Below are positions 25,641 through 48,788 of a stretch of DNA of 64,000 bases, piece by piece. The stretch is from positions 310,001 to 374,000 of the forward strand of contig MU008181.1 in assembly GCA_010909165.1 (NCBI GenBank). Reading direction: 5' to 3'. The notes under the pieces are model-generated. The model had not been told where the DNA came from. It made no database searches and saw only the letters and a list, made by a program, of their open reading frames with translations. How positions within the stretch are numbered: position 1 is the first letter of the stretch; each line of letters starts with the position of its first letter. Source of the stretch: Anthoceros angustus (taxonomy: Eukaryota; Plantae; Anthocerotophyta). Both the position numbers and the translations under genes were made by a program.

Positions 25641-26108
25641 GAGCTAGCTAGGGTCGCTAACACCTACACTTGAAATTCTACTGCCCTTTTTTTTGGTGAA
25701 TGTAGCCAAGGTCGCTAACACCTGGTTTGAGCTAGCCAGGGTCTCTAACACCTACGCTTGAAATTCTACCGCTCTTTTTTTGGTGAATATAGCCAAGGTC
25801 GCTAACACCTAGTTTGAGCTAGCCAAGATCGCTAACACGTACACTTGAAATTCAACTGCCCTTTTTTTTGGGTAAATGTAGTCAAGGTCGCTAACACCTG
25901 GTTTGAGCTAACCAGGGTCACTAACACCTACACTTGAAAGAGCTAGCCAGGGTCGCTAACACGTACACTTGAAATTCTACTGCCGTCTTTCTGGTGAATA
26001 TAGCCAAGGTCTCTAGAACCTAGTTTGAGCTAGCCAGGGTTGCTAATACCTACACTTGAAATTCTGCTGCTCTTTTTTTTGGTGAATATAGCCAAGGTCA
26101 GTAACATC
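25641..26108. repeat. Tandem repeat of about 88 bp, about 5.4 copies
   Basis: GAGCTA(G/A)C at 25641, 25729, 25816, 25905, 25940 (partial unit) and 26027. Unit GAGCTAGCCAGGGTCGCTAACACCTACACTTGAAATTCTA...TTTTTTGGTGAATATAGCCAAGGTCGCTAACACC. Confidence 0.92.
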
Positions 26109-26474
26109 TGCACTCCAAATTCTTTTGCCATTTGTTATAGGACGTTATATCATTCTCACCATATTTCTGGACGTGCTCAATGTTTAAATCCGGATTAGAA
26201 CCGAAGACCTCCAGTGTTTGAGACTAATGTGATAACCAACCACAACAAAAGCAAATGACATAACAAATTTATTTATGTTTCGCTAATGGTGGAAGGATGA
26301 CCATGTGAGAGAGTTAGTACAAAATAATAGAGGTAAAAAATAGAATAAATTCTTCTTTTTTCCCCTATAAAAATAAACTACACATACATACATCTGAACT
26401 AGAAAAAAAATAATTTTCTGAGACAAGAGAAAAACAAAATTGTAACCAACTACACTATCCACACTCAGCCTATC

Positions 26475-26511
26475 TATGGCATACCAAAGAGGAGAGGGGG
26501 ACATTTTTTTC
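26475..26511 (+). repeat. Left terminal inverted repeat of the IS3EU/GingerRoot-type element
   Basis: 15-bp perfect plus about 25-bp imperfect inverted match to 48397-48442. Confidence 0.92.
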
Positions 26512-26759
26512 TTCCATAAAACTTTTGGTGTCCGGTTTGGCCAAAATGGGGTAGCCAAAGGGGACTCACCAAAGCGGCCACTTGGCAGTCACGGAAGATA
26601 GAAAGGGAACTTTCTTTTTCCCCGCACTCACTCTTGGTTTTTCTCGCAGCCGGATGAAGAATTTTTTTCCGCGCAGCGTTCTATAGGGTGCGGTGGGTGG
26701 CTTACCTATGCCACCTGCCCGTTTTTAGGGTTCATGTCCTAAGAGATTGGGCGAGATGG

Positions 26760-27330
26760 TTTAGGCGGCGGGCGGCGGCGGGCGGCGGCGGGCGGCGGCG
26801 GGCGGCAGGCACAGGGGCGGGCGGGAGGCGGGCGGGCGGGCGGCGAGTGCGAGGCGGCGGGGCGTGTCGAGCGGCGGCGAGCAAGCGCCTCAGCGGCGGC
26901 GGCGAGCGCCTCATTGTGGCGCGGCGCGCGGCGGCGGCGAGGCGGGCGAGCCCGGCCACCCGCAGGCGTTAGGCGGCAGGCGGCAGGCGGCCGGCGGGTG
27001 GGGTTGCCGCGGGCCGCAGCGGAGAAGGCGTGCGTTGAGGCAAAACGAGGCGGAGGAGGAGAGCTGCGGTGGCGGCGGCGGCGAGCGGCGGCGGCGGCGG
27101 GCGGGGAGGCGGGCGGGCGGGCGGGCGGCAGGCGGGCGAGGCGGGCGGCGGCGGCCTTCCTGCAGGTGACGGGCGGGCGGCGGCGGCGGGCGGGGCAAGG
27201 AGGCGGGCGGGGCAAGGCGGGGAGGCGGGAGGCGGAGGAGGCGGGCGGGCGAGGCGGGCGGCGGCGGGCGGCGGCGGGAGGCGGGGCGTGGCGAGGCGGC
27301 AGGCGGGGCGCGGCTGCGAGGAGGAGGCGG
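26760..27330. repeat. GC-rich (GGC/GGGC) low-complexity subterminal tract
   Basis: Nearly continuous GGCGGCGGGCGGC runs. The long Pro/Arg/Ala ORFs here are a by-product of composition. Confidence 0.9.
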
Positions 27331-29161
27331 CCAGTGCAGTCCTCCCCATCCTTGCACCAAGCAACTAACCTCGTCCTCATTCCTTCGCCCATGGTGATGC
27401 CGAATTGTTTGATGCTCATTTCTTTGCAAGCGGTGACACGCGAGATGGTACTGGTGCCGCAGTATTGTAGGCTTCCAGGTTGTGGGCGGGATGGCGACCC
27501 TCCTCCTCACATGCCCTGCAGCGGGCCTGTGACCCACATGTGTGGGGGCGGCGGAGGAGGGTTCCACGATCTCCTCGAGCTCACCCGATCCTAATATGTG
27601 GAGTGAGTTGTTTCTGGTCTTATGACCCCAAGAAGCCAATGCATCCTTTGTCCTCGAGGAGCTTGATGCGCTTTGACATGAGGACCTAGCGACCTCATCG
27701 CCACATAGAGAACTACCCTTGGACTTGAAGTTCTTTTGGTGAGGGGGCGTGGTCGCGGTATTTGGGTGGACTGGACTTCCCTCTGCGAGTGCCTTCCAGG
27801 CAGGCGCGCACTATTTCATGCATACCCATTTTGATGGGTGGCCATTGGGTCCTAACGATCCTGCGAGGCCTCGCGGTCCAAGCACCCGAGTCACTTTGGA
27901 GGACTTCAAGTGGATGGCCAAGTTTCACTCGACGGCTTGACTCCACGGTACCGCGGCCTCGGCCTTCTCGCCCCCTCCTGGATTTCATCTCAACGTCTTC
28001 TCTGAATTGGGCCTTGCGCCAACCATGTCTTGTGGGAGGAGATGAGCGACCTCTACATCATCGAGGGCGGTGATCATGGGGTTGGGGTGGTGGTCATGTG
28101 CTTTAGGCACCTGTGGGCGAGGGTTTTGATAGGACTTGATGTCAGAGGCCTTTACGGTTTAGATTTGTAGGTGTCTTCGACCCCGCTCCCACGCTTTGAC
28201 TTGACCAAATTTTGGCCTTCCTCTTCGTGTATTCTCACCACTCGGCGGATATCATGCCCACGTTTTCAACTTGGCCCTCGGTTCATGCTTGCCGCGCGCC
28301 GTGTTCGTGCACGCATTTTGGCCGCTTTTCCATTCTCCCTTGGCCTTGTCAACCTCGCTTTTGCCCGCTTTTCCATGTCGTCACGCTTGCTTATTAATTG
28401 ACAACCCAGTGCCTTCTTTCGGTGTGATTTGGGTCCATGAACTCGCTCTTCACAGGTTCGTCGCTTTGATACTTGCCTCCACTTCAAGGAATGCGGTTTC
28501 ACACAAAGGTGATTCCGACAGCGTCTCCACAATTTTCATGCACCATTGTCGGAAGGTCGGGGGAACTTGCGAGAATGTCTCGCCCATGCCTTGCGGCCGG
28601 ACCATTCTTTGGGCGGAGGCTATTCCATGAGCCCTGCGTCATGTGTCCCTGCGGTGGCCCCTCCGGCCCTCACGTTTCTATCCTATCGGCCTGATCCCCG
28701 TCGCCTTCCCTATCCATGTCTCATTGTCTCCCGCTTGCACTACGGCCCGCCTAGTCGCGCCCCGGTGCCACGCGGCGCACCTCATATGAAAAGCGTTACG
28801 AAGAGGTTAAGGGCTCTCCATGTCCACAGTGTGCAGTCGCATTCCACTCCACACCATCTCCTGCGGAGGGATCCCCTCGCGCAATACAAGCACAGTACAT
28901 CACCGCTCTATCGAGCGATACATGTCCGGAGGTAATTTGTACACTTCAAGCACACCTCGTCGCCATGTCCCTCGCCACTTGCATGTCCTACACAAAACAT
29001 TTTGTCATCGTCACAGCTGTTCACATTCGACGGTCTTGGTGGCGTTCACTTACCCTCGGCAATGCTATCGGAGGCGGTGGCACCTCGGTGCAACATTGCG
29101 GCGTCGTCGGGGACATAGTAGTCGTTGTCGTCCTCCTCGTCTACCCCATATGCGGGCGGCC

Positions 29162-30407
29162 CTACCGGGCCCGGCCGCTCCTCCTCTGGAAGGCCTCCGC
29201 GGGGACGTGGCCTGCTATGTCATCGTCTCCCGACCTCATTTTCCTCACCACATGCAAGTTCCACACCCGAACGAAAGTCGCCAGCTCTGTCCTCATGGTG
29301 GGCATGAATGCTGCGTGCAAGGAATGTATGTGCCAAGGGTTCGTGGTATCCAACTCACGGCTGTCCTGCAGCTCCAACATGTACCTCTTGTACAGGAAGC
29401 CCCACTTCTCCTTCAGCGCCCTCCAGAAGTGCTCGATGCGCTGCCTCACACCCACGTACCCACCCACCAACCACGCCGTTATGTCTGGCACGGGCTCCGG
29501 CGTCCGGAAATTGCGCAGGCCGCATTCGGCAAGCAGAATGCGGCAAATCCCCTTCACATGACATCCAGTATCCACCTTACCTGATTGTGCACCGATGGCC
29601 CCCGAATGAAGTTCCTACCGTTCTCTCGCGGCCTACTGGTTCAGTCCTCCTCAACTAGGTTGTGCTCCGTGTCGGACGAATCCTGCGGGTGCCCAAACCT
29701 CGCACCGCCTCCACGCCTTGTAGCCTTGTTCCCCGCTTGTTGTCCTCGGCCCGCCCACGTTATGTAGTCGTTGCCCCATCTATGGCGTGCACCACGAAGT
29801 GGAACATGTACATCTTGTCGTGCAAGACACCCGCACCGTTAGCTTCATGCCTTGTCTTTGCGGCTATCACTCAGCGACCACCATGTGCTCCAAGTTCCGC
29901 ACTCACGATCCATGTGCCACATGTACGTTACATTACGTGTATTGCACCGCGAATCGCTGCGACCTCATTTCCATGGCCTCGGTGCATGGCTCGCAATCTT
30001 TGCCGTCACACCTCTCAGGCACGGCGGCCAGCCCGGCCGCGGTCTTGCTGCACAATCCTCACTCCCCAGTTCACACCCTGCCGCGTGATGGTCACATTTT
30101 GTAGGATGAGGTTGCAGACGTCTTCTATTGTTCTCAGCGGACCCGCGTAGCAGCCTCTCCATCCTGGGCACCGTGCCAGCCACCTCCTCAACGTCCGCGG
30201 TGCACATCCCAGCTCGCCTGCGAGCCCTTTCAATGTCCGTCCCGCCCTCCTCCGCCCCTCTGCGATGTTCCTCAAAGTCTCCACTTCGAAAGGGCAGCCT
30301 GCCGACCGTTCCCTTCCCTCTCCCCGCCGCTCGCCCTCTGTTTCAGTATCAGAGGGCTCTGTGATCGTCTCCACCTCCGACACTTCGCTTTCCTCCCCTT
30401 CCTCCAT
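29162..30407 (-). pseudogene. Intron-containing IS3EU/GingerRoot-like DDE transposase, copy 1 (frameshifted as assembled)
   Basis: N-terminal HTH (LAGELGCAPRTLRRWL), then MWHMD|gtgagt intron, DKMYMFHFVVHAIDG, FGHP..SD and FIRGPSVHNQ. A 140-nt GT-AG intron (29580-29441) follows, then RIEHFWRALKEKWGFLYKRYMLELQDSRELDTTNPWHIHSLHAAFMP.MR.EL.TFVRVWNLH. The 3' extent beyond 29162 is uncertain. Confidence 0.82.
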
Positions 30408-33400
30408 CGGATCCCCCCCTCCCGTCCTCTCCGCGCCCTCGGCCCCTCCATCTCCCCCCCACCCTTGCAGCACGCGCCATCTCCCCTCCGCCCCCACCCA
30501 CCCCATACGGTCGCCCGGCCTCACCCGGACCCCTCCGCCCCTGCCATCCTCTCATTGCCCTGTGCCCCGGCCCCTCCGCCTCGCCTCGCACCCGCTGGGC
30601 CTCGGCCCGCCCCCTCCGTCCCTCCTCCGGTTCCCTTTGCGGCCCGCCCCTTCCTCCCACCCGCGCCCGCGCCCAGCCCACCCACCCGCCGTCACTCGCA
30701 CCCGGATGGCGCTCACGGCCCGCCCCTCCGCCCCTTCCTCCTTCCGCTCCAGCGCCCTCGCCGCGCCCCTCCGCCCGTCCCTCCTACCGCTCCGCGCCCT
30801 CGCCCTCTCCCCTCCCACTCCGCCCCTCCCTCCCTCCTCCGCGCCTCGGCCCGCCCCCCTCGGTCCCTCCATCCAACCCCAGCGTCCGACCCCCGTTCAC
30901 GCCATCCACCCCGCCTCGTCATCACCCTCATCTCCCCTCCTTCCCCACACCGTCGCCCGCCCCTCATCGCCGCCCCTCCGCGCCATCAATCCGCCATGCC
31001 ACAGGCGAACCCAACCCGCCCGTTCTCGGCGTCCCCATGATCACTGCGGTGTTTGCGTACTCGGGCCTATCCTCACCAGCCTGCCTCGCCGTTGCGTGGT
31101 CTCGGTGGGATTCACTACTTGAGCGGTCGGGTTTGACCGCCGCCTTTGTTCCATCGACAATGCGTGGTTTCCCTCATCTCCGGCCGTATGTCGAATAATT
31201 CCGCTTTCACGCCACCGGTTTCATGAAATGAACGCTCATGTGCCTTATTCACTTCGACGCTTTGGGTTGCTTGATGACCCCATGCCTAAGGACATTCATG
31301 CGCCTTGCTTCTTTCCACAAATCCACGATACAATGTTTGACAAATACCGACCCCACCATTATTCCTCGCCTTTCCACCCCACAACTCTCGGTGATAGGCC
31401 ACTGGTGTGTGCACGTTGAAGAGAAACACGAGACTCTTTGTAGCGGCCCCCACTCGGAATTTCGGGCTCCCATATCTGCGCGGTGCTCGAGGATGGCGTG
31501 AGCACGCAAAGCCTCCTCTTGACAAAGAAGCTCACCTTGTCCACACAAGACATACGCGATCCCGGTTGTCAAGGAGAACGGCAACCGACATTGCGGCGGC
31601 ACCCCTCGACTCCGCGCGGGCAATTGTCATTCGCCCGCCGATCGGCACATCGCCAACATGCCCATGTAGTCCTGCCGGTCCACACATCTAAGCGGGGAAA
31701 TGCTGGCGGTCCATACAGTGATGCACCAGTGTCACATCCCCACTCCACCAGCCACCCGCCCCTTTGCGGTCTCCGCGCATGCTCCTTTTCGAGGATGCAT
31801 GGCGATCCGATTCAGCGAGCATCGTGTCCACCACTCGCATGGTACACGTGGGTCAGCGATCGAACCCACCCGTACACGTCGACCATCGTCACCAAGCACG
31901 CGCGGCTTGCATCCGCCTCACCACCACCATTGCTTGCACTCTTACGAGCGGCCAACTCCATCGCCTTCCATCCCTTCTCCTTCCGTGTTGGACCCGCCCC
32001 AACCCACCAATCCGTGGCGGAGGCTCCTTGTTCTTCGCAGCCTCCGCAATTCAAATGTGTCCATGTGCTGAAATAGATACCCTCGGTGCATGTCTTGCAA
32101 CCCACAAATCCACAATGCATTGCCCACCTCTCATCCGGAGCATCCTCCACTGGCATGGTTCCATCCGCACGCACCAAAACCACCCACGAGTCCAAGCCCG
32201 CAGCTTGTCTCCTCCGATGCCTCGAAGACATGCGCCACCATGTCCCTCCATCCGCTATGCGACGTGCGAATGTCGTCAAGCGCGTTGCGAACACGGCATG
32301 GACGGCGGATGTCGGCGTCTCTACCTCGTCAACGCGCGCCCCTGCCGCCATCGTGTCCCTGTCCCTGTTCGTTCGCCGCGGATCGCGCTTTGCTGTGTGG
32401 CCCCCATCCCAAAACAACCGCGCATCGAGCCACCGCCGCCTTCTTCGTTCCATGCTCGAATGTTCCCCACCCTCCTTTCCTTAGCCTTTGCGCGACCCCA
32501 ACCCCAGCTGTTCACGCCCCGCTCTCACAGGTCTTGCACAGCCACTGCACCGGACCGCGATTGAAGTTCCCAATGTCCCTTCACCCACAGGGTTTCGTCG
32601 ACTTCCGTTGTCGCGCCCTCCGGCGTCGTCGGAAACGGTGGTCCTGCTCTGCCCGATGACCCGGCCATGGCTCCACGATTTCCACAACTCGGACTGTCGC
32701 AGGAGAATGGAGTGTCCCTCCAACGGCGGCGCGCATGGACTCTTCCTTCCGAAATTGAATAAGGCGGGCATCGCGATTTTCGGAGGCACCGCAGAGGCGA
32801 TGTCATTGCTCCTCCGCCACACTTTAAGATTCCACGCGCCGCGTTGTCCTTCTCGACCGCGGTGCATTAATTCGCCTCCTTTGTGTGCACAAGCTACCTC
32901 CTTGCCCCACATACTCACAGCGAACACCGCGACCAATGAACACGCAACTTGCGTCATCAATAATTACCAATGGGATGGCATTTGAAACATGTAGTCCACA
33001 ATCCCAACGAACATCACATCACACAACGACTTGGCCACCTCTCTACAACGGCTCGGCAATCTCGCTAGGCCATGCCATAAACCGTGTTGTGAGAAATGGC
33101 GGTCGGCACCTCGCGCACATAGTGTCCTCGTCATACAATGGAAGGAGCAATGTCCGCACGTCATGGGTGAGCCTGTCCTCCGTCATCAATGGTACTTCAA
33201 ACACCACAATTGGCCCCTCACCAAAGAACACGCGGTCCGTAATGAAGGTGTAGCTTCCTCTGTCGCAAAGACAACCTACGCCTGGCGAACATGGTCTTAT
33301 TTCGGTGCATGCCTCAAAGGTCGTCCGTTCGAGTTATCTGCATACATCCTTGAGCCGGAGAAAAAGCGACCACCTCCAAAGATAACGTGTTCACAATGGG

Positions 33401-35149
33401 CATCACCGGCGTCAAGCTGCACCACAAGTCCGAACCCGCCCCACAAGCCCCCAACATGCAAGCACTTTTAAACAAGACCTCCTCGGTTAGCCTCTCGACC
33501 ATGCTCACCTCCATGCCAAGTGCGGTCCCGGACGGCGTGCAAAATGTCGAAAAACTCGGATCCCGTGATGAGGGCAACGGCCTCCTTGATGGCCATGCGC
33601 CGTCCGCGCACTTGCCGAGGCCTTCTTCAAGATAGACAACACACCCATCACCTCCGGGTAGCACGCTTTCATGTCCGCCTTGAAGGCCTTCCTCAAGAAC
33701 GATGAGCCCGGCGCATCTTGCCACACACCTTGACGCCGTCCATCCGGCGCCAAGGCGTGTGCAATTGTGGTCATGGGGCATGACACTTGCACGGCCAAAG
33801 ACCATGTACACGAGGTAGCCAAAGAACCGAGCACAGAGTCGAGGCCTGTTAGAATGAAAGGCCAGGGGCTATGATGAACACTCCACACACACGCGACTCA
33901 CCACACAATCGCTCATCCGAGATGGACTTCCCCTTGTGGTGCGGTGTCCACAGCCCCGGGGTTGTCCCTCGCCTCAAACACGCAGTTCATGAACATGGGA
34001 TTCGCTGCCGCCATGCCTCGGGCCGTGGCGAGTCGGCCTAAATCCTCTCCGCCTCGGCAAACTACCCCCATGCCGGGTTGCGATCGGACATGGAACCGTG
34101 GGAACACAGACTTCCCATCACAATGTTGCTTGAAGAGGTCGTCAGGCCCGCATTCGCTGCCACTCTACACACCCGCAAAGCGGTCGGAAAGTGGCCATGG
34201 CAGCGTATCTGGGCACTTCAATTCTTGAATGGCAAGGGCGGAGGTCTACCTTCAGACAATCCGCCTCTTACACGGTGATCTGCGCTCGTGGATGGGCTCC
34301 AGTGGTATTTGTGAGGCGAACCGGCGCATAGCGGAGTTGGCGGCATCGTGGGCCTCTTGCGCCACTTCCGTAAAGCGCCCGACGTCTCCCTCACAACGCG
34401 CGCTGCCCGCGGCGGGCGCTCTTCCATTCTCCTTGGCCTTGTCAACCCGCCGCCCCGCCTTTCCATGTGGCCACGCTTGCTTATTAATTGACAACCCATA
34501 CAGCCGCCTTCTTTCGTGATTTGGGTCCGCTGGAACTCGCTTCCTGAGGTTCGCCGCTTTGATAGCCGCCCACTTCAAGGGAATGCCACACAAAGGTGAT
34601 TCCGACACGCTGCCTCCACAATTTTCATGCACCATTTTGAAGGTCGTGATGTAACGGTGGAATGTCTCGCCATGCCTTGCGGCCGGACCGCAGAAACCTT
34701 GGTCGGAGGAGGCTATTCCATGAGCCTCGCATGTGTCCACTGTGGCCCCTCCGCACTTATCCTATCGGCGGTGATGCCCCGCCCCGCCGCCTTCCCTATC
34801 CATGTCTCATTGCCTCCCGCTTGCACTACAGCCGCCTGCCGCCCGGCCACCCGCGACGCACCTCATATGAAAAGTGCTCAAGAGGTTAAGGGCTCTCCAT
34901 GTCCACAGGTGCACGGGTTCCGCATTCCACTCCACACCATCTCCTGCAGAGGATCCGCCGCAATACAAGCACATGCCACCGCCTATGCGATACATGTCCG
35001 GAGGTAATTTGTACACTTCAAGCCCGCCTCAGACGCCATGTCCTCGCCACTTGCATGTCCTACACAAAACATTTGTCGTCATCAAGAATCGCTGTGTGTT
35101 CACATTCGTGACGGTCGGCCGACGCTCACTTACCCCCACAAGAATGCTA

Positions 35150-36379
35150 TGAGGAGCGGTGGCACCTCCGTGCAACATTGCGCATCGCGTGGTCCGGGGA
35201 CATAGTAGTCGTTGTCGCCTCCTGCCTACCCCCATATGCGGCCCTACCCAGCCACCCGCCTCCTCCCCTGGAAGGCCTCCGGGACGTGGCTCCTATGTCA
35301 TCGCCTCCCGACCTCATTTTCCTCACCGCAAGTTCCACACCCTAACGAAAGTCACGTCTCTCATGGTGGGCATGAATGCGGCAAGGAATGTATGTGCCAA
35401 GGGTTCTGGTATCCAACTCACTACCGTCCCGCAGCTCCAACATGTACCTCTTGTATGTGAAGCCCCACTTCTCCTTCGCGCGCCTCCGGCGTTCGCTCAC
35501 ACCCACCCACCCACCAACCACGCCTGCTATGTCCGCACGGCCCGGCCGGAAGTTCCAGCCGCATTGTGAAGCACATTGCGGCAAATCCCTTCACATGACA
35601 TCCAAGATCCACCTTACCCGATTGTGCACCGATGGCCCCGAATGAAGTTCCTCCTGCCTTCTACCGGTTCAGTCCTCCTCAACTAGGTTGTGCTCGCAGC
35701 AAATCGACCGAATCCGGGGTGCCCCAAACCACGCACCGCCTCCAGACGCCTTGTAGATTGTTCCCCGCTTGTTGTCCTCCAAGACCGCCCACGTTATGTA
35801 GTGCCCCATCTATGGCCGCGTGCACTCAAGTGGAACATGTACATCTTGTCGACTGCAAAGACAACACTCGCACTGCTAGCTTGTCGTGCCTGTGCCGCGG
35901 CTATCGACTCCGACCACCATGTGCTCCAAGTTCCGACACTCACCATGTGCCATGTACATCTGTTCTGTGTATTGCACCACCAATGCGCACGCGACTCATT
36001 TCCATGGCCTCCTACCGCATGGCTCGCAATGCGCCACCGCCTGGCACGAGCACTCACTGCCCGCAGGTCGCCTCGCACAATCCTCACTCACACCCCGCGT
36101 GATGGTCACATTTTGTAGGATGAGGTTGACGCCTTCTATTGTTCTCTGACCAGGTGCGCCTCTCCATCCGGCACCGCGTGCCACCTCCTCAACGTCGCGG
36201 TGACATCCCGCTCGCGAGCCCTTTCAATGTCCGGCCCCGCCTCCTCCGCCTCCGCGATGTTCCTCAAAGTCTCCACTCAAAGGGCAGCGCCGACTGCCTC
36301 TTCCTCTCCCCCGCCGCCTGCTTTCGAGTGAGGGCTCGTGATCGCCTCCACCTCCGACACTTCGCCTCCCTTCCTCCAT
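35150..36379 (-). pseudogene. IS3EU/GingerRoot-like DDE transposase, copy 2 (more indels)
   Basis: Homologous to 29162-30407. It retains the ttgcag acceptor before GACAAGATGTAC that copy 1 lacks; KEKWGFTYKRYMLEL is visible. Confidence 0.75.
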
Positions 36380-37099: not shown

Positions 37100-40000
37100 A
37101 TGTCGAATAATTCCGCTTTCACGCCACCGACAATTTTCATGAAATGAACGCTCATGTGCCTTATTCACTTGCGAACGCTTTGCTTTTACGCCCATGCCTA
37201 AGGACATTCATGCCTTGCTTCTTTCCACAAATCCACGATACAATGTTTCAAAGAAATACCGACCCCACCATTATTCCTACGCCTTTCCACCCCACAACTC
37301 TACGGTGATAGGCCACCGGTGTGTGCACGCTGAAGAGAAACACGAGACTCTTTGTAGCAAGCCCTACACTGGAATTTCGGCTCATATCGCGCAGGCTCGA
37401 GGATGACGTGAGCGCAAAGCCTCTTCGCAAAGAAGCTCACCTTTTGTCCACGACAAGACATACGCATTGGGTCAAGGAGAAACGGCAACCGACATTGCTG
37501 CATCGGCCCCCCTCGCCGACCGCTGGCAATTGTCATTCGCCCCCGCCGATCCGCATGCCATCGCCAACATGCCCATGTAGTCCCGCCCGTCCACACATCT
37601 AAGCGGAACTGTCGTCGGCCCATACGATGCACCGAGTGTCACATCCCCACTCCACCCAGCCCACCCATCGCCTTTGCGCGCATGCTCCTTTCGTCAGAGG
37701 ATGCATGGCACCGCAGCCCAGCAGGTGCATCGTGTCCACCACCGCGTGATGGTACACGTGGTCGCCGCGATCGAACCCACCCACGCACACCGGTCGACCA
37801 TCGCCACCAAGCAAAAGATGACTCGCTGCATCCGCCTCACCCCACCACCATTGCGACTCTTCAACGCGGCGCCAACTCCATCGCCTTCGCATCCCCTTCT
37901 CCTTCCGTGTTGGACCCGCCCCAACCCACCAATCCGTGGGAGGCTCCTTGTTCTTCGCAGCCTCAATTCAAATGTGTCCATGTGCTGAAATAGATACCCT
38001 CGGTGCATGTGCCGCAACCCCGTCCACAACTGCATTGCCCACCTCTCATCCGGAGCATCCTCCACTGCATGGTTCCATCCTGCACGCACTAAAACCACCC
38101 ACGAGTCCAAGCCCGCAGCCCTTGTCTCCTCCGCCAAGACATGCGCCACCATGTCCCTCCCATCCGCTTATGCGACGCGAATGTCGTCCGGCAAGCGCTC
38201 GCGAACACCGGCATGGACGGCGATGATGTCGACGCCTCTACCCGCCGCCATCGGGAACGCGCCCGCCGCCATCGCCGCCCACGCCTCGTGTCCTCGCTCG
38301 CTCCGCCCCAACGGATCCGCTACCGCCTGTGGCCCCATCCCGCAAAACAACCGCATCGAGCCACCGCCGCCTTCTGCTCCATGCTCAATGACCGCCCCCA
38401 TCCTCCTTTCCTTAGCCTTTGCCCGACCCCAACCCCAACCCCATTGCTCACGCCCGCCTCTGTGTCTTGCAGCGGACCGGACCGATTGAAGTTCTAATGT
38501 CCCTTCACCCAGTGGTTTCGCCGATTTGTCGGCCGCTCCGGAACGGTGGTCTGCTTCGCCCGATGACCCGCCATGGCTCCACGATTTCCACAACTCGGAT
38601 CGCCCCAGAGAATGGAGTTCCTCCAGCGGCGCGCATGGACTCTTCCCTTCCGCTTGAAATTGAATAAGGGGCATCGCGATTTTCGGAGGCACCCAGAGGC
38701 GCGATGTCATTGCTCCTCCGCCACACTTTAAGATTCCCGCACGCGCCGCCACGTTGTCCTTCTCGACCGCAGCTGGTGCATTAATTCGCCTCCTTTGTGT
38801 GCACAAGCTACCTCCTTCGCCCCACATACTCACAATTAACACCGCAGCAATGAACACGCAACTTCTCATCAATAATTACCAATGGGATGGCATTTCGAAA
38901 CATGTAGTCCACAATCCCAACATCAACACATCACACAACGACTTGGCCACCTCTCTACAACGGCTCGGCAATCTACGCTAGGCCATGCCATAAACCGTGT
39001 TGTGAGAAATGGCGGTACACTCGCGACATAGTGTCCTCGAGTCATACAATGGAAGGAGCAATGTCCCGACGTCATGGCTGTGGGAGCTGTCCTCCGTCAT
39101 CAATGGTACTTCAAACACCACAGGCGCCTCACCAAAGAACACGCGTCCGTAATGAAGGTGTGCGCCTCGTCTCGCAAAGACAACCTACGACCGTCGCGAA
39201 CATGGTCTTCACTGTGTGCATGCCTCAAAGGTCGTCCTGCTCGAAGTTATCTGTACATCCTTGAGCACCGGAGAAAAGAACCGACCACCTCCAAAGATAA
39301 CGTGTTCACAATGGGCATCACCGAAAGGCCCAAGCTGCACCACAAGTCCGAACCTGCCCCCAAGCCCCAACATGCAAGCACTTTTAAACAAGACCTCCTG
39401 CTAGCCTCTCCGACCATGCTCACCTCCATGCCAAGTCAAGGGTCCCGGACGGCGCAAAATGTCGAAAAACTCCGGATCCCCAGCCGTGATGAGGGCAACT
39501 CCTTGATGGCCGCCGCCGGGTCCGCACTTGCCCATGAGGCCTTCTTCAAAGATAGACAACACACCCATCACCTCCGGGTAGCACGCTTTCCGCCTTGAAG
39601 GCCTTCCTCAAGAACGATGAGCCCCGATCTTGCCACACCTTCGCACGCCGCCCATCCGGCCGCCAAGGGCGTGTGCAATTGTGGCCACGGCCATGGGGCA
39701 TGACACTTGCACGGCCAAAGACCATGTACACGAGGTAGCCAAAGAACCGAGCCGTGAGTCGAGGCTGCGTGTTAGAATGAAAGGCCCGCAGCTATGATGA
39801 ACACTCCACACACGCGACTCACCACACAATCGCCATCCGCGAGATGGACTTCCCTTTTGATGTGGTGCGGTCCCCGAGCCCCGGGGTTGTCCTCGCCTCA
39901 AACACGCAGCTTCATGAACATGGGATTCTCGCTGCCGCCATGCCTCGCCCGCGTAGTCGGCCCCTCGCCAACCGTCTCCGCCTGCAACTACCCCCATGCC

Positions 40001-41454
40001 GGGTTGCGATCGACATGGAACTGGGAACAGACTTCCCATCACAATGTTGCTTGAAGAGGTCGACAGGCCTGATTCGCTGCCGCCCTCTACCACACCAAAA
40101 CAGAAAGTGGCCATGGCCAGATCGGGCACTTCAATTCCGAATGGCAAGAGAGGTCCTACCTTCAGACAATCCGCCTCTTACACAGGCGTCATTCGTGGAT
40201 GGGCTCCAGAGTGGTATTTGTGAGGCGAACCGGCGCAGCGGAGTTGGCGGCATCGTGGGCCTCTTGCGCCACTTCCGTGTAAACCGCCGACGCCTCTCAC
40301 AAACCGTTACGCTCGCCGCCGGGCGATGACGCCTTCCATTCTGATCGTGCAGCGCAGCAACTCCTCCTCATCAACAGAGTGGCGGAGGTTGGTTGTGGCC
40401 CATGTCTCCAGCAAGTCCTCAGGCTCTATGGCCCCTAGATCGAGGGCCGGGTCTACGTCTTCCAACAGCTTCAGGAGCCTCGCCGCGGGCGCGATGCGAT
40501 CGATGAAGCCTTCTCGCCCCGACATCGTAAAGCTCCAACCCCGGACGCCACCACGCGCAACCCCCTCCGTGTCTATCCTGTCCTGCCGCCTTCTCCATAA
40601 TCGAGTGCACTTGGTCAACACCGCAGCTGGTCCGGATTCCCCATCCTGCACTCTCTCTCGCGCGCCGCAGGATGTCGAAAACATTCTTGGCCTCACGCGC
40701 TGCGCATTCCGTTCACATGGGAGATGGTGGCGGCTTTCTTCGACCTCCGTGAGGACGGAAGCGCCATGCCGCAACCGCTCGTATGTTTGAATCGACGCCG
40801 ATGGCGGGATGGCTGCGCTGCTCACCGCGGATGCTCCAATAGCGGCGATCCATCTCGAGCGGCGCCGGGCGCCCTCCTTTCATCTCGGAATCGTCAATGA
40901 CTACGAAGGCCCCACTGCGGTGCACTGTGCCGGTCGAGCGATAGCGCCAAGCCACTTGGTCGTCGGATCTCGGTCAACCCAGATCGAGTCTGTCCACCAC
41001 GTGCACGTCATCTCCGTCAATCCGCTTCCCGCCGCCGCTCCTTCCTCCTCTTCCAAGACCGCTTTTCTCGGTAGTTACGGACCATGCGGCGCATCTCGGG
41101 ATACGGATCCCGGACATACAAAAGCGCACCTTGCAAAACGTTAGCGCGCTGCGGTGATGCGAGCGAAAGGGCGGGTCGCAGAGGGCTGCGATGGCGTGAC
41201 TGCGCACCTTCGTTGCGCTCGATGAAACAACAGGCCCAAATTGCGGGAAGGCGGAAGAGGGGCGCCACCCGGTCCACAGTCGGCGGCCACGGTCCTTCAA
41301 ACTCGTCATACCTCGCTCCCACGGGCATGGCGGTGACGTGCAACTCCACCACATGCTGCGGCAATCCTCCGACAAAGCGCCTCCCCATCGCCTCGGTCCT
41401 AAGTGGATGGCCTCGTAAATGCGATTCTGCGGGCGTAATAGAGAGCTTCTTCAT
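37100..41454 (-). other. Candidate second, multi-exon gene of the transposon (product unidentified); its 3' part is duplicated at about 31200-34430
   Basis: Protein-like minus-strand segments (e.g. GFIDRIAPAARLLKLLEDVDPALDLGAIEPEDLLETW, FLRKAFKADMKACYPEVMGVLSILKK, FFGEGPIVVFEVPLMTEDRLTHDVRTLLLPLYDE), plausible splice sites and Cys/His clusters. No family recognised and the boundaries are approximate. Confidence 0.35.
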
Positions 41455-42679
41455 GCACCGGCCCTGCGCCGCCAGACGCCGCCCTCTGCCGTCTCAGAAC
41501 CATAATCGGGTGATTGCGTGTGTGAGGGGATGTTTCCCCGCCGCGCCCGCAGTTCCGGCGTGGAGGAACGTGCACCCCCCTCACCCCCGGAAGGTACACT
41601 CGGCTGTTGCGTCGCCGATCACGCAATGCACTTCGGCCAAGGGTCCGCCGATGGCGGTGTCACACACACCGGAGGGCCTTGCGGATTGCCTCGCGCCTTT
41701 GAATTCTAGCAGCGCGTGGGAGGCTTGGAACGCGATGAGGCCGACCTTGGCGTTGGGGATTTGGGAAGACATTTGCATCCTCGTCGTGAGTTCACCCAAT
41801 CTCCGAGAATATCACCGCCATCGCGGCATGACGGCGCTCGGCCTCTCCTCGCGCCATGTTTTCACTTGGATTGGTGCGAGTCCACAAAAATGGGTGTGCC
41901 TTGGTCACGGCCTCCGCCCGCGATTTCCAGTCAAGGGTGGGAGATGGGGCGAGGCGGCGTGTCCGCGATGGCGAACCACCGGCCGATCTGCGGGAAGATA
42001 CGGCGCCGTCTCCCGTCTTCCGCTCTTTCGCATGACAAGAGCGGAGGTTCATTATTTCGTGGAGTCGTGCCCCAAACGCCTCAAACCCCGCTTAGGATTA
42101 AGAAATGCCCGCCTTTACATGTACGGAAACACGACATTCATTACATCGGAAGACGGAGATGGCGCGCGGCGTGCGCCGTCTCCATGCACCTCGTCGGATG
42201 GCGCATTGTTTAAGGCGAGATGGTGGAGATGAGGACATCTTTGCTTAAACGCCTTCTAGAAGACGCGTTGTTTATGTTTAGTATTCGTGCGGAGGGGCCG
42301 GACGAGGCCGTGGACAAGAATGCGGCCCGCGGCGCTTGGGAAGGCGGTCGCATCTTCAGCAGGGCCATGGTCTGCACCGGTGGCGGTCGTGAGCAGGCGG
42401 TTGCAGCCTCGCCTACAAAACATCTCCTCACGGAAGGGGATTCCGACATGACCAAGGACGTGTGTTCCTCGTAGCAATTTTGCGGTTTTGTCAAATCACT
42501 TCCTCCATGTTTCTGACCCCAACCCAAGCATATATAGTGAATTTGTCCCTGGCATTTCCGAACCTGAATGGATGGCGGAATAACAGATGGATATTGAGTA
42601 TGAGGTTTTTTTGTTCACACATGGCTAGTAGGAAAAGGGTTTTGGGCCAAAGTATAAGGTCCAAAAAAGGATGGAACAT

Positions 42680-44300
42680 AATGCATAATGTTTCAATTTT
42701 CAAAGGCCAAGGAAGATAGTGGTCCATATAGTACAGAGGACTTTACAACCTTGGCCTTTGGGATATTTGAAAGGAGGAAACATCATGCATGGTGTGTCCA
42801 TGCCAAAGGCCAAGGAAGGCGAGGCATATACTACAAAGGACATGTCATCCTTGGCATTTGGGATTTGTCACAAACGAAACATCATGCATGTTGTTTCAAC
42901 CACCAAAGGCCAAGGAAGTTAGTGCTACATATACGCAGTAGGCTTGGTCTTCCCATATGTGTGTGTGGTTGGATGGCAAGATGTAAAGGTAAAACATCTT
43001 TAGGGTTTAGCGAAGGGGCGTTGGCGTGTTAGAGCATGTGCACATATGCATGTAATCCGCATATATAGACATAAATATTACATATGTCTTGTTCCTTGGA
43101 CATTGGCCTATAGTAGGATTGATAGGACATGCTAGCATCCTTGAAAGGTTGGTATATAATATATGGATATATATGTAGGAGAAAGTTGAAAACTAAGCAT
43201 CTTTGCGCAGATGTGCTCAGTTTTTCTTCCTCTATCCCTTGCAAAGCAAATTTTCCATGCATCGTCGATAAAGTTTCTTGGCATATGCCTAAGGATCTTT
43301 GTCGGTAGCAATGGAAAAGCTTCTTATTTTTGTTTCCCTTTTCTATGTATCGCGAAAGGGTTTTCCTTTATATGCATCAATGAAAAGGGTCCTTGCACTT
43401 TGGTACAAGTGATGATAATGTCTTCGCCTTGGAAAAGAGGTATATTATGTTCTCTATATATGAAAACACCGTATACGCATGATATGTGAGAAGTTGTGTC
43501 TCTAGTTTTGCCTTCTTCTATCCTTCGTCGATGGCAAGTTTCCATGCATCATGAACAAAGTTCCTTGGGGCATGGGGAATGAACTTGTCCATGATGCATG
43601 CGAAAGCATATGGTTTTTGCCCTTTTCGCGGCTTCGAGGAAAATGGTCCTTGGCCTTTGGTAGAAGTGAATGGTAATGTCTTCATCTTAGAACTAAGGTA
43701 TATTATGTATGTCTATATATGCAAGAATAACACCGTTAACGTGCATGATAGGATAGAAGTTGTGTTGTGGGTTTTTGCCTTTTGTGCTCGCTTTTTTTCC
43801 ATGCATCCGAGTTCCTTGGCCTATGGCGAAGCTTCCAGTGCATTGAAAAGTTCCTTTCCATATGTTACCTTTTGTATGCTTGCATCTTTCCCGACATGTG
43901 GGAAAAGGCTCCTTGGCCTTTGGCACATGTGACAATGAATGTATTCTGTTGAACCGAGGTATATCATGTATGTCTATATATGTGCGGGAATAACAACGTA
44001 AACGCATGACATGGGGCGGTTTTGTTTTGGTTTTGTCCTTGTAATCTTCGCTGTGGCAATTCTTTGAATGCATCCTCCAAAAGTTGTGGCCCATGGGGAT
44101 TGATTTTTCCACGATGCGTAAATTTCCTTATGTTTTTCCCTCTATGCTTGGCCTATGTGTATGCTTGGCCAATGGAATTGTCTCTACATGCATCATCGAA
44201 AAGGGTCCTTGCCTATGGTACAAGTCATTGTTCATGACCGGTCTTTGAAAATAGTTATATCATACATGGCTATATATGTAGGAATAACGTGGAAAACAAA
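42680..44300. repeat. Degenerate AT-rich modular repeat (about 260-295-bp units) with an inverted left portion
   Basis: GGTATAT(T/C)ATGT..CTATATATG at about 43439, 43697, 43959 and 44255. TCCTTGGCCT(T/A)TGG recurs to the right and its reverse complement CCAAAGGCCAAGGA recurs at about 42704, 42803 and 42903. Confidence 0.65.
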
Positions 44301-45639
44301 CAAGGTGCTTGCGGTTGGTATCGATTTTTCCTCCGCATCGTGGGCATCATTGGCCACATGGCGGATGACGTTTTGCATGATGCATGCCATACGTTGTCTG
44401 CATGACGCACTGATCTCAAGGTTGTGGAGTCCGAGGCACAAACGCCGAAGGCAGCGGTCAAACTGTCCGTCACGCGATCCAGCGCGGCGGTGAACGTTGG
44501 GAAGCCATCCGAACTTGCCGTGATGGGCGGAACGAATGGCCATAACGAGGAAGAGCGGCAGAAGCGCCGGCGAAGAATGGCGGAGGCGCGAGAGGCGATG
44601 GAAGCGGCGGACGGCGGGTGCCGACGGTGGTGGCGCGCGCCACCACCGGTGTTGTGGCGTGTGGAGGTGATATTGCGTGCGATGGACACCTCCCGATTTT
44701 CTTACGGGTGTAGGGTGTGAACGTGGACGACGAACACACCGCAAGTGTGATGGATGGAGAGGAAGGAGTGCAGTGCGCGTGCTCCTCGGCGATGGCGATG
44801 GGCGGCGGTGGGCAATCGCTTTTCCGCATGCGCCTCCTTGGAAGAAGCGGAGTTTGCATCGCGAGTGGCTAGTGGAAACGCGGAAGAGCGTGGTGCGGAA
44901 TCTGAAGGTAAAACATACAGTGCAGCTTAACGATCACAACACACGAGCGAAGGGACGGTTGTCGTCCGGACGCAGTCTGGTGATGCGAGGAGGTGAAGCT
45001 CCGTGACAAAGGTCGGGAAGACGGGTGGTGGAGCGGGATGGCCGTCGGGCGGGGAAGGTGTCGTGGAGGCGGTGTCCATGGATGGCGGGCGATGCGTTGG
45101 CACTTTCGGTATGAGAGGTGCGACGGATGAGGAAGGGGTCTACGAGGAGCTACGTTTTCTTTGTCGCTTTTTACTTGCTATGCGATCCGCATTATGGCGG
45201 TGCCATCTTTGTACAATTGTGGCATTAGTAGTAGTGGTGGCAACTGCGCTGTGTTTGCGTGGACGGTGACCCGGAAAAAGTATGTTTATGTAATTGATGA
45301 GAGAACCGAATATTGAGTTTAAACAAGTGAACATTTTGGCGCTCCAGTACACCGACTGCGAATGTCGTGGGAAGAGGAAAGGAGTTGGCGATTCGCCTAC
45401 AAACGAAATGTAGGCCAAAGGGTTGAGAAGGGCGGGGCGTCCGTGTCATGGTTGTTCAGCGGTTGAGCAGGCGGGTGGACAAATGGAGTCCATGACATGT
45501 GGCGAGACCGCGCCACGAGAGCTGCAACTCCCATTCCGGAAGTGCATGCAAGCTTTGAGGAGGCGAACATGGGCGGCCGCTGCCCAGGCAAGGCAAAGAG
45601 GCCGTGGCCGTAAACACCTCAGCCGGCCAGTGCGGCATT

Positions 45640-47400
45640 TGCAATATTGGGAGGCGTGGGCGGGGAAGGGCGGGTGGAGGGAGTGAAGGCTATGCGCGTT
45701 GTGGGAAGACGGATGGAGGACAAGGGCATGGGCGGTAGTGGCGGGGAGGCGGAGGCGGCGGCAGGCGGGAGGGTGGAGGAGACTCTGGCCTGGCGGCGGG
45801 GCGCCCAGCGGCAGGAGGAAGCGCCATGGCGGAGGGGTGCCGCCGCCATGGCAGCGGTGGCGGCGCATGGCCCGGCAGCGAGAGGAGGCGGGAGGGACAC
45901 AGCGTCCCCTCCCGGCATGGAAGGGGCGGTGCGGCAAGGGTGCGGGGCCCCTCCGCCCTTGGGGTGGAGGCGAAGGAAGCGGCCGCCGCGGAAAGGCGGG
46001 TGGAGGCAGGGCCCTCCCCGCGAGCAGCGCAGCGGGCGGGGAGGCAGTGCGGCGGGAGGAGGGGAGACGGTCCCGTGGTGGCATCACCCAGGGCGGCCAA
46101 AGCGACGGGCGGCACCTGCAGCGCCAGGCGGCGGCAGGCGGCGGCGGGGAGGCACCCCTCCCCATGGCAGCGTCGCCCGGCAGCGATGGCCAGGCGGGGC
46201 GGGAGGAGGAGGGGAGGCTGCCTGCCCTCCCCATGGCGGCGCGTGAGCCAGCGGTGGCAGTGCGGCGGGAGGAGGAGGGCTGCCTCCCCATGGCGGCAGC
46301 GCCAGTGGGCAGCGGCGCACCAGAGGAGGAGGAGGGCACCTCCCCATGGCGCATCTCCAGTAGGAGGAAGGCGGCCTTGAGGAGAGGATCTGAGGCACCT
46401 TCCTCCCCGCCCGGCGCATCAGCGTGGCGAGGCAGCGGCGAGGCGGCGGAGGAGGGGAGGGCACCTTCCCTCCCCAGCATCCCCATCGGCGAGGGGAAGC
46501 GGCCGGGCGGAAGGGGAGGCAGGTGCCCTTCCCCGCCAAACGCCTCGCCAGGTAGCGGGAGGGCACCCCTCCCCATGGCGGCCGGGCCGGGGCGGCCGCG
46601 GAGGCGGGAGGGCACCTTCCTCTCCCATGACGGCCTCCCGGAGCGGGAGGAGGTTGCCCTCCCAGGCGGGGGCGGTGCGGAGGCGGAGGAAGCCAACCCG
46701 GGGTGGAGGGCGACGGAGGCGATGCCGCCCCGCCGCCAGGGAGGTGGATAGGATGGCGGATGCCCGTGGCCGCGCGCCGGCCGGTCGAGCTCGGCATGGC
46801 GGTGGCGATGCAATGTCGCCCGCCGCCATGCCCGAGCGGAGGTCGGCCATGGTGGCGGAGGGCGATGACCGCCGCCCGAGGCCGAGACGGATGGCTCGCG
46901 ATGGCGGGGAATGAGGCGGGATGCGGATGGCGGCGCCATCTGCCCGGACAGGCAACACCGGTGATCTTGGCGGCGATCGCCCAGCGGGGAGTGGGCCAGG
47001 CGCGCGGGCAGCAGGAAGCCCGATTCTGGGAGGAATAACCGTTCCATCGGCGGCATCTCGGCGTCGGCGGGGCGGCAGATTAGGCGGAGGCTCGGGAGGC
47101 GGGAGGAGGCGGGAGGCGTTGCTGCGCGAGCTCACGGCGGTGGAGGCCATCCGGCGGCACACCGGAGGAGGAGGAGGGGAGCAACGGCAGAGGGCGGCGG
47201 AGCGAGGCGATGTCAAGGAGAAGGAGGAGTGCGGCTCAGGCCCCAACTCCGCGGGCGAGCACAAGGGGAGGAAGCGCGACTACGAGGAATCGGACACGGT
47301 GTCCGAAGTGGAGAGCCAAGGCGGGTGCCTCCACGCCGAATGCCCGAGCGGCTTCTGAGGAGGCCCGGCGAGAGGAGGCGATGAGGCGGAATGCTCGGCG
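45640..47400. repeat. GC-rich subterminal low-complexity region with recurrent CCCTCCCCATGGC motif
   Basis: CTCCCCATGGC-like motifs at about 46160, 46227, 46284, 46341 and 46569 embedded in GGC/GGA runs. Confidence 0.75.
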
Positions 47401-48396
47401 TGGAGGCCATGGAGGGCACAATTAAGGTTCTCCAGATGATCAAGCGCATGGATGACGAGGAGGAAGGCGTCGTCATCCCTTGTGCTCGAGTTATCGGCGC
47501 GTTTTGGTTTTGCATAGGGGCGAGGCATGCGCGTAGGAAGGCCGTGGGAGATAGGGTTTGATGCTAATTGTGCAATTTTGCGATGTGTGCGTGGACATCC
47601 TTTTGATGAATGGAATGGCACCCTTATAATGAGCGGCTCGTTGGAGGGACCGTAAACTTTGTTGGTGAGGTATCGACACTCGGCGCTGTTGCACAGGCCT
47701 TCCACATTCTTGATCGCCATCATCTGCATTTGACGAACGCGCAATGGAGAAGGATGTCTACTCCGTAGCTGGGATCGGAGGAGCGGTAGAACAAATTTAG
47801 CGGTGGAATCCCCAAATCCCACCACGGCGATCGCCACATGCACCCGATTTCTTGAGGCAGGCGGCTTCTATGTTCCGGAACATTTTCAACCCTCCACACG
47901 CCCGGGTGTCCGCGTCTTCTTAGCTGTGGACAATGGAATCGTGATTTTGTGAGGAGGCTATCATCGGAAACATTGAGAAGGACGATCGTGCTACGGTGAA
48001 GCAAGAGCGCTCGAATGAAAACAACATTGGCCGTGCAGACCATCATTGCATTCGCATACCATGGCGCGGGGTAGGGTTCGGCAACCACCGGTGTGGTCGG
48101 CGCAGCAGCGTGTTAGGGTTTGCCATCCATGGCGGGCCATGGAAGAAAACTTTATGGCGGAAGGTAGGGTGGAAGGTCAAAACAATGTGTCACGGCTCTT
48201 TGTTTGATTGAAAGTTGCAAGGACAAAAACATTTTCAACCCTACACCCTTTTCGAGGGAGGCGTGTGTGTCCCTTTGGTGCTTGGCATTTGTTGGTTAGG
48301 GCGCCAAAGCGCCATGTGACCATGTCTTTGTAAAAAAAGATCTCGTCGGAATCTCGGCATATTCCTCAAGATCCCCAGGGCTTGCATGGGTTTCGC

Positions 48397-48442
48397 GAAA
48401 AAAAAAATGTCCCATCCCCTCTGTCCCCTTTGGTATGCCATA
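48397..48442 (-). repeat. Right terminal inverted repeat of the IS3EU/GingerRoot-type element
   Basis: Ends ...CTTTGGTATGCCATA and is immediately followed by the TSD CCTATC. Confidence 0.92.
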
Positions 48443-48788
48443 CCTATCTCCCCACTATTTGATTTTTATCTTCACTTCGCATTTATCACAATCACGGCCA
48501 ACAAATCAATACGTAATAACTTTCGCTAAAAACAAAATCAGTAGATAATAAACAATGCAAAAGAATATTGACACCAATTTTCGAATGTAGAACTTTGTTG
48601 TTTCCCGCGCCTTCACGCGGCTCGGGCCGGATTGCCTTCTGCGGTCTCCTCCATGGATTCCCCAGAGGATTGGAGTGACTTTGAGTCGTCCCCCAACATC
48701 GCGATGCAGGTAAGTGCTGTGATGTGATCAGTTCCTTTCGTGAATTGGATTGCTCTGAAAGTTGAAGTCGTTTGCCTTCTCGGCTCAG

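Follow-up and report, generated by a model that had tools for sequence, protein, structure and literature searches.

IS3EU transposons have TA..TA ends, generate 6-bp target site duplications (TSDs) and cluster with GingerRoot (bootstrap 99; Kojima 2023, PMC10045372). In rust fungi their ends follow the pattern TAYGG..CCRTA, with terminal inverted repeats (TIRs) longer than 30 bp, and fungal IS3EU elements bear accessory genes (TET/JBP and alpha-kinase being the examples from rusts; PMC12730594). Among plants, GingerRoot has been reported from bryophytes and lycophytes; gene fragments are frequent in these elements, and the 77 intact copies of Selaginella lepidophylla span 3.9-12.9 kb, with TIRs of 100-150 bp (Cerbin et al. 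2019, PMC6839031). The background given on this literature by a first-pass annotation of the DNA analysed here agrees with the three sources.

We analysed a stretch of 64,000 nt from the genome of Anthoceros angustus (hereafter the window: assembly GCA_010909165.1, contig MU008181.1, positions 310,001-374,000, forward strand), in which positions 26475-48442 (21,968 bp; Table 1) very probably represent a single insertion of a decayed, non-autonomous IS3EU/GingerRoot DNA transposon in repeat-rich DNA of a non-seed land plant.

Table 1. Features of the Anthoceros element, in window coordinates
Feature	Position	Strand	Remarks
Left TSD	26469-26474		CCTATC
Left TIR	26475-26514	+	tip TATGGCATACCAAAG, then imperfect inner stretch up to GGGACATTTTTTT-CTTC
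GC-rich low-complexity block	26740-27330		GGC/GGGC-type short repeats
Segment high-copy in DNA run X1	27800-28400		summed word depth ~45-107
Tandem unit 1	28320-34396	-	6.1 kb; carries transposase pseudogene copy 1
Microhomology, first duplication boundary	28328-28336	+	9-mer TTCCATTCT
Transposase pseudogene copy 1	29165-30400	-	HTH and rva_4 DDE core
Copy 1, last exon	29237-29446	-	intact; rva_4 profile positions 102-171
Copy 1, catalytic E	29432-29434	-	in QRIEHFW
Copy 1, predicted 140-nt intron	29441-29580	-	CAG/GTAAGG ... GGCAG/CGC; predicted by homology
Copy 1, catalytic D2	29671-29673	-	in SDTEHN
Copy 1, catalytic D1	29908-29910	-	in WHMD
Copy 1, in-frame stops	30015-30017, 30006-30008, 29760-29762, 29641-29643	-	
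Copy 1, frameshifts	~29925, ~29677	-	
Copy 1, helix-turn-helix region	30171-30248	-	HTH_23 E=1.1e-3, HTH_Tnp_1 E=0.17
Tandem unit 2	34414-40302	-	5.9 kb; carries transposase pseudogene copy 2 (~35250-36390)
Remaining two TTCCATTCT copies	34422-34430, 40334-40342		
Degenerate tandem array	42650-44400		AT-richer; ~100-bp and 260-290-bp periods
Low-complexity block	45450-47400		GC up to 76%; scattered imperfect repeats
Right TIR	48397-48442	-	
Right TSD	48443-48448		CCTATC

Termini, relatives and group membership

The tips of the element (TATGG...CCATA) fit the TA..TA and TAYGG..CCRTA patterns: the left tip TATGGCATACCAAAG starts at 26475 and the reverse complement of this 15-mer closes the right end at 48442. 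Past the 15 perfect bases the arms can still be aligned, the left one as far as about 40 nt and the right one as far as about 46 nt, at the cost of 4 mismatches and a single 6-bp indel; similarity is nil further inward. The flanking CCTATC is perfect (6/6) on both sides. The terminal structure claimed beforehand (15-bp perfect and about 40-bp imperfect TIRs starting TATGG, with the 6-bp TSD CCTATC) was thereby recovered, and among the 3,427 TAYGG..CCRTA pairs of the window the ends of this element were the only ones with at least 18 of 20 matching tip positions (1/3,427), as well as the only ones to combine at least 14 of 20 matches with a perfect 6-bp flank repeat; by either criterion, none of 100 windows simulated under a first-order Markov model (0/100) held a comparable end pair. 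A scan of metagenome contigs for the TIR pattern gave 0 matches. A subterminal motif of CCAAAG type was considered as a transposase-binding array and dropped, its enrichment being too mild.

For the transposase, 122 relatives were found, with fungi, one mollusc and one moss as their sources, and each of the 10 that were scanned contains rva_4; protein identity to the fungal and animal members is 30-39%, and a word-indexed protein search with the intact last exon returned no candidates. Two relatives lie within elements of 4.5 kb (Tilletia, L001) and 4.2 kb (Aspergillus, L004); in both, the TAYGG tips match 20/20 and the 6-bp TSD is perfect. The Tilletia element also contains a second gene, which has no Pfam domain. 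No TIR/TSD ends were found around the moss (Ceratodon, L012) and metagenome (L005-L009 and L013-L015) loci, which are therefore probably fragments. The closest sequence compared with the transposase is that of a plant GingerRoot: over the spliced catalytic stretch, 19 of 38 residues (50%) are identical to Selaginella Sl-GR-005, and the alignment reaches a BLOSUM62 score of 89, as against 24 or less in 20,000 shuffles.

With GingerRoot the Anthoceros element has in common the 6-bp TSD, the TA..TA termini, an integrase-related DDE transposase (including the half-identical catalytic stretch), the host range, the insertion away from genes and the frequent loss of the transposase. It departs from GingerRoot by its shorter TIRs (about 40-46 bp, in line with the more than 30 bp of IS3EU and below the 100-150 bp of Selaginella), by its length (22 kb versus 3.9-12.9 kb in the 77 intact Selaginella copies), and by having a 6-kb internal tandem duplication and no detected captured gene fragment. 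With IS3EU it shares an identical TAYGG..CCRTA motif, TIRs of more than 30 bp, the 6-bp TSD and the rva_4 core, hallmarks that are also those of the complete Tilletia and Aspergillus elements; the fungal elements are, however, either 4-5 kb long and intact or equipped with defined accessory genes (TET/JBP, alpha-kinase), whereas the 22-kb Anthoceros element has dead transposase genes and no identifiable accessory gene. Termini, TSD length and transposase type thus agree on the IS3EU/GingerRoot membership proposed by the first-pass annotation, an assignment that we consider well supported.

Ginger1, Ginger2-TDD and LTR integrases are characterized by TG..CA ends, HHCC and GPY-type motifs and a Pfam rve core, and the TSDs of Ginger2 are 6 bp long. 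The Anthoceros element resembles them in the retroviral-integrase-type DDE fold (and Ginger2 in TSD length), but has TA..TA termini, rva_4 as its sole core match and an HTH N-terminus. On account of these termini, and as no ORF scanned matched rve (PF00665) at E≤0.01, an element of Ginger1, Ginger2 or LTR-integrase type was ruled out. Mavericks/Polintons possess AG..TC termini, a protein-primed DNA polymerase B and capsid/ATPase genes; they were likewise ruled out by their different termini and by the absence of such domains from the 237 ORFs.

Transposase remnants and the internal duplication

The rva_4 domain was detected on the minus-strand ORF 29165-29614 (E=2e-10). A profile of 35 relatives placed the HTH, the D1 region, SVHNQ and the RIEHFW exon (90 bits) collinearly on the minus strand, the upstream parts requiring relaxed thresholds. 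When the 122 relatives were compared with the window by tblastn (1e-3), the last exon was the sole match; it is the only individually significant part, the upstream core having been traced from weak collinear matches and by eye. The N-terminus shows a weak HTH match (HTH_23 and HTH_Tnp_1 both fall under the Pfam cut-offs) and no match to a zinc finger or to rve. Removal of the predicted intron from copy 1 would fuse ...SVHNQ to RIEHFW.... Both copies of the transposase are pseudogenes, so that the integrase-like DDE transposase claimed for the locus stands as to its type, and falls as a working gene on the stops and frameshifts present in both copies.

The internal duplication suspected at the outset is real: the two units share 82% identity (BLAST) and differ by 13.6% substitutions and 239 indel events over about 5.6 kb aligned, and the 9-mer TTCCATTCT occurs three times in the entire window, each time at a duplication boundary. 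Copy 2 is more decayed than copy 1 (RIEHFW is deleted), and its stops at 35794-35796 and 35669-35671 are homologous to the TAA (29760-29762) and TGA (29641-29643) of copy 1. As these two stops are common to both copies, the transposase gene was dead before the duplication; moreover, since both resident genes are broken, any movement needed an enzyme from another copy. Coding constraint after the duplication was not detected, the differences between the units having no codon periodicity and including many frame-breaking indels. The high indel density from unit to unit suggests that some of the frameshifts could be assembly noise.

Interior, CpG content and age

The earlier description of more than 10 kb of additional coding-like DNA, and of the element as carrying cargo, found no support in further domains, homologues or a codon-position signal. 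None of the ten longest ORFs matched Pfam, and the 237 segments free of stops and 60 aa or longer (low-complexity ones included) yielded nothing beyond rva_4 and the weak HTH_23; WPP and RGP (E about 0.01) were put down to chance, given 176 queries. A protein search with the largest non-repetitive ORF (385 aa) returned no homologue among 5.8 billion proteins, and the whole window had no Rfam match. The long ORFs are rich in R, P, A, G and S, a composition typical of GC-rich non-coding DNA, and those of the 45450-47400 block are compositional. Nested transposable elements were ruled out as the cause of the large size, internal TIR/LTR and TSD signatures being absent from 40.3-48.4 kb. DNA run X1, in which one segment is high-copy (Table 1), consists of low-coverage contigs that show which parts are repeated and give no junction information. 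The extra DNA is thus a duplicated dead transposase region together with low-complexity and satellite-like DNA, with no recognisable gene or gene fragment; the unusual size itself was correctly noted (22 kb, or about 16 kb minus the duplicate).

The observed/expected ratio of CpG is about 1.0 throughout the 22 kb, uniformly from TIR to TIR, and falls outside, to 0.3-0.8 in most flank bins. The recent insertion formerly read from the clean ends is not borne out, as TSD and 15-bp tips are short and without CpG, about 13% of such ends would be expected to stay unmutated by chance at the non-CpG divergence of the internal duplicates, and 4 of 25 aligned sites of the inner TIR differ. It is conceivable, if rather unlikely, that the host holds an IS3EU/GingerRoot lineage that is habitually 20-28 kb long, can be mobilised in trans and escapes CpG decay; were this the case, it would imply evasion of CG methylation, or a recent arrival (e.g. 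by horizontal transfer) with the internal decay already present.

Competing readings and significance

If the stops and frameshifts of copy 1 were assembly errors or missed introns, the element would be autonomous and its transposase would work. The intact last exon, the clean GT-AG intron that restores SVHNQ/RIEHFW and the unusually high indel density between the units could be cited for this, but the four in-frame stops are situated within stretches aligned gap-free to the family profile, at sites that leave no room for introns, and the TAA and the TGA recur at homologous sites in the 82%-identical copy 2, which independent assembly errors would not yield; we regard autonomy as very improbable. 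Real cargo that escapes Pfam through its shortness or novelty, whether genes specific to the lineage or gene fragments captured from the host, would be in keeping with the frequent gene fragments of GingerRoot (PMC6839031), the accessory genes of fungal IS3EU (PMC12730594) and the second, domain-less gene of the Tilletia relative, and the Pfam scan had a lower ORF limit of 60 aa. It is nevertheless decidedly unlikely in view of the 237 ORFs that have no Pfam match apart from the transposase, the 385-aa ORF without homologue, the non-coding-like composition of the long ORFs, and the inter-unit differences, which ignore codon position and often break the frame.

The repeat-rich flanks might also be taken to mean that there is no single 22-kb unit, its ends stemming from two insertions or its 6-kb repeat from an assembly artefact. 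Such an origin is barely credible: the perfect 6-bp TSD pairs both ends (a match that unrelated ends would show with P about 1/4096), the 64-kb window contains no additional TIR copy, 13.6% substitutions and a 9-bp microhomology are not expected from a false assembler duplication, and the CpG-rich composition is even between the TIRs and drops outside.

Under the preferred reading of a single, decayed and non-autonomous IS3EU/GingerRoot insertion, a family transposase would have bound the TIRs and excised the element, and reintegration with 6-bp staggered cuts would have left CCTATC on either side. As both resident genes are pseudogenes, the enzyme would have been supplied by another, intact family member. 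The 6-kb tandem duplication bounded by the 9-bp microhomology doubled an already dead gene, and the gain in size may be attributed to this duplication and to the growth of low-complexity and tandem repeats, not to gene capture.

Within the known IS3EU/GingerRoot group, the locus ranks as a dead copy of excessive size and not as a gene carrier. For annotation, the whole 22 kb is to be treated as transposon sequence and masked; none of its long GC-rich ORFs is a gene. One feature is unexplained, the undepleted CpG, which could point to methylation escape or recent arrival. The copy exceeds every intact GingerRoot reported in Selaginella, and shows inflation by microhomology-mediated internal duplication and repeat growth instead of gene capture. 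Furthermore, as a plant copy with clearly defined limits it extends a superfamily of which few plant members have been curated, and the finding that rva_4 proteins go with TAYGG..CCRTA ends and with 6-bp TSDs, both in a land plant and in two lineages of fungi, aids the annotation of such elements.

Boundaries and surroundings of the element

The IS3EU/GingerRoot-type transposon occupies positions 26475-48442 (21,968 bp), since its terminal inverted repeats (TIRs) start and stop there; the wider span of the first-pass annotation (26469-48448) also takes in both target-site duplications (TSDs). On the left, the TSD CCTATC is followed by TATGGCATACCAAAG (starting at 26475), and on the right the same 15-mer, reverse-complemented, ends at 48442 and is followed by CCTATC. 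End-to-end alignment showed that past this 15-mer the TIR is imperfect (4 mismatches and one 6-bp indel) up to a common GGGACATTTTTTT block, yielding arms of ~40 nt (left) and ~46 nt (right), inward of which similarity is absent. Although an inverted 15-mer pair is by itself not rare in 64 kb, its combination with the other end features is: among the 3,427 TAYGG..CCRTA pairs in the window, only that of the element reached at least 18/20 tip matches, and it alone combined at least 14/20 matches with a perfect 6-bp flanking repeat, while 100 Markov simulations produced no pair of either kind. The alignment and simulations confirm the TATGG-starting TIRs (15 bp perfect, ~40 bp imperfect) and perfect 6-bp TSD reported in the first pass. 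Furthermore, of the 22 1-kb bins wholly or mostly within the element, 21 have a CpG observed/expected ratio of 0.81-1.20, as against 0.26-0.83 in nearly all flanking bins (with the switch coinciding with the TIRs), and GC content is 48-66% by sub-region, as compared to 41% for the 6.5 kb on its left and 48% for the 5 kb on its right. These contrasts independently set the 22 kb apart as a single foreign unit.

The element lies between mosaics of short tandem arrays. Within that at 19800-26100 (45-138 bp units), array units at 21.0-23.1 kb contain an IS3EU-like tip (TATGGGGTGCTATCCA, in both orientations), here in satellite DNA and without TSD. Large arrays of ~310 bp period, with 3.3-kb higher-order repeats, occupy 1-6200 and 53500-64000; the right block is 92-99% identical internally, and the left one is inverted relative to it (75-80% identity). 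The two BAHD acyltransferase genes of the left flank are HHT/ASFT-like (nearest type: omega-hydroxypalmitate O-feruloyl transferases), and their best named relatives show just 62% identity in ferns (Adiantum) and ~60% in seed plants, which is compatible with a land plant belonging to neither group. This host placement agrees with the plant range reported for GingerRoot.

Coordinates of features in the element and its left flank (copy 1 and copy 2, transposase pseudogenes of the two tandem units)
Feature	Position	Strand	Remark
In-frame stop, copy 1	TGA 30015-30017	-	upstream of last exon
In-frame stop, copy 1	TGA 30006-30008	-	upstream of last exon
In-frame stop, copy 1	TAA 29760-29762	-	upstream of last exon; also at homologous position in copy 2
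In-frame stop, copy 1	TGA 29641-29643	-	upstream of last exon; also at homologous position in copy 2
Frameshift, copy 1	~29925	-	homology-following frame
Frameshift, copy 1	~29677	-	4-bp deletion vs copy 2
BAHD acyltransferase gene	12684-14276	-	left flank; PF02458; HxxxD and DFGWG motifs
BAHD acyltransferase gene	16878-18699	-	left flank; PF02458; HxxxD and DFGWG motifs
GC-rich low-complexity sequence	26.74-27.33 kb
GC-rich low-complexity sequence	30.4-30.9 kb
GC-rich low-complexity sequence	36.4-36.9 kb
GC-rich low-complexity sequence	45.45-47.4 kb
AT-richer degenerate tandem array	42.65-44.4 kb

Transposase relatives and gene decay

A Pfam scan of every stop-free segment of 60 aa or longer inside the element (237 in total) gave a single significant match (PF24764, rva_4, integrase core; E=2e-10, above the curated cut-off), in ORF 29165-29614(-), together with a sub-threshold HTH_23/HTH_Tnp_1 match at 30171-30248(-); rve, zinc-finger, polymerase and other TE domains were absent from these segments. 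With this ORF as query, exhaustive phmmer against 1.84 billion representatives returned 122 matches (top identity 39%), rva_4 being present in 10 of the 10 longer ones scanned; matches of named origin come from fungi (Tilletia, Aspergillus, Arthromyces, Phenoliferia), the limpet Patella and the moss Ceratodon purpureus. To tie the protein family to an element type, the DNA surrounding two of the fungal relatives was retrieved: a 4,514-bp element (locus L001, 5680-10193; 20/20 tips from TATGG, TSD CGATAC) encloses the Tilletia gene, and a 4,210-bp one (locus L004, 9824-14033; 20/20 tips from TACGG, TSD ACCGAA) that of Aspergillus spectabilis. Both are complete fungal IS3EU elements, whose tips and TSDs thus match the published hallmark, i.e. 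TA..TA ends with usually 6-bp TSDs (PMC10045372) and, in rusts, TAYGG..CCRTA ends with TIRs >30 bp (PMC12730594). The Tilletia element also carries, on the opposite strand, a 362-aa gene without Pfam domain. On the moss sex chromosome (C. purpureus chromosome V, CM026426.1) related rva_4 'integrase core' gene fragments are annotated, around which no TIR or TSD was found within 10 kb on each side.

IS3EU and GingerRoot form a single lineage (bootstrap 99; PMC10045372), and the spliced catalytic stretch of our element (FIRGPSVHNQ/RIEHFW...) is identical at 19 of 38 ungapped positions to Selaginella GingerRoot Sl-GR-005 (sequence as printed in PMC6839031), with a BLOSUM62 score of 89 against a maximum of 24 among 20,000 shuffles; Sl-GR-005 is nearer than every database match.

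A family profile made from 35 relatives recovered collinear pieces on the minus strand: the HTH region, the D1 region (WHMD, then HDKMYMFHFVVHAIDG), D2 (SDTEHN), SVHNQ and a strongly matching last exon (90 bits). A predicted canonical 140-nt intron (29580-29441(-), CAG/GTAAGG...CAG/CGC) joins SVHNQ to RIEHFW, and a second short one is possible downstream of WHMD (GTGAGT). The integrase-like DDE transposase of the first-pass annotation therefore stands as an rva_4 core, but not as an intact gene: in copy 1, four stops and at least two frameshifts interrupt the frame tracking homology, and copy 2 (~35250-36390) is more decayed, its RIEHFW segment being deleted and its Pfam match gone. As two of the stops are common to both copies, they are neither assembly errors nor recent, and the gene was dead before the region was duplicated. 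The element is thus judged non-autonomous, and once the gene had died any transposition would have needed transposase supplied in trans.

Internal duplication, cargo and age

BLAST self-comparison revealed one 6-kb tandem duplication (unit 1, 28320-34396; unit 2, 34414-40302; 82% identity). Global alignment of the units gave 13.6% substitutions across 5,645 aligned sites, a high ratio of small indels to substitutions (239 vs 770) and a Ts:Tv of just 1.1, to which assembly noise in the GC-rich DNA may have contributed. That the duplication itself is an assembler artefact was rejected, as the TTCCATTCT 9-mer occurs three times in the whole window, precisely where the units begin or end (28328, 34422, 40334). 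Such boundary microhomology is what microhomology-mediated tandem duplication classically leaves behind, and we take this process to be the origin of the units. Differences between them show a third-position excess in no segment and frame-breaking indels are everywhere, hence the units have been without coding constraint since duplication.

Instead of the large cargo initially proposed (within >10 kb of coding-like, GC-rich and repeat sequence), the interior consists of the tandem duplicate, low-complexity sequence and degenerate arrays. No cargo gene was found by Pfam, protein search or the inter-unit codon test, given that domains beyond the transposase and constraint are lacking, the remaining long ORFs are compositional (R/P/A/G/S-rich), and the longest non-repetitive one (385 aa) yielded no homologue; short captured gene fragments are possible. 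In the contigs of the low-coverage DNA run X1, 27800-28400 (straddling the start of unit 1) is a high-copy repeat (summed word depth ~45-107), and other element parts are almost missing.

The recent insertion read from the clean TSD and tips is not supported. These 42 bases contain zero CpG, and non-CpG sites differ by 9.8% between units (~4.9% per lineage), so that, given in-place duplication, ~2 changes would be expected and ~13% of such ends would be unmutated by chance; moreover, the inner TIR mismatches at 4/25 aligned sites. Alternatively, the decay may be older than a recent trans-mobilisation, and as both scenarios fit the data, recency does not follow. Undepleted CpG is odd for sequence old enough to hold duplicates 13.6% apart; possible causes are that its CG sites are unmethylated, that the element arrived recently in an already-decayed state, or that conversion is biased.

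Taken together, the 6-bp TSD, TAYGG..CCRTA ends, TIRs, rva_4 core and similarity to Sl-GR-005 place the element in IS3EU/GingerRoot, as first proposed. In comparison to described GingerRoots (3.9-12.9 kb) it is larger, has shorter TIRs and, in place of captured gene fragments, contains an internal tandem duplication. It adds a member to an already known kind of transposon and is of modest interest; only its anomalous CpG content and its large size deserve further attention.
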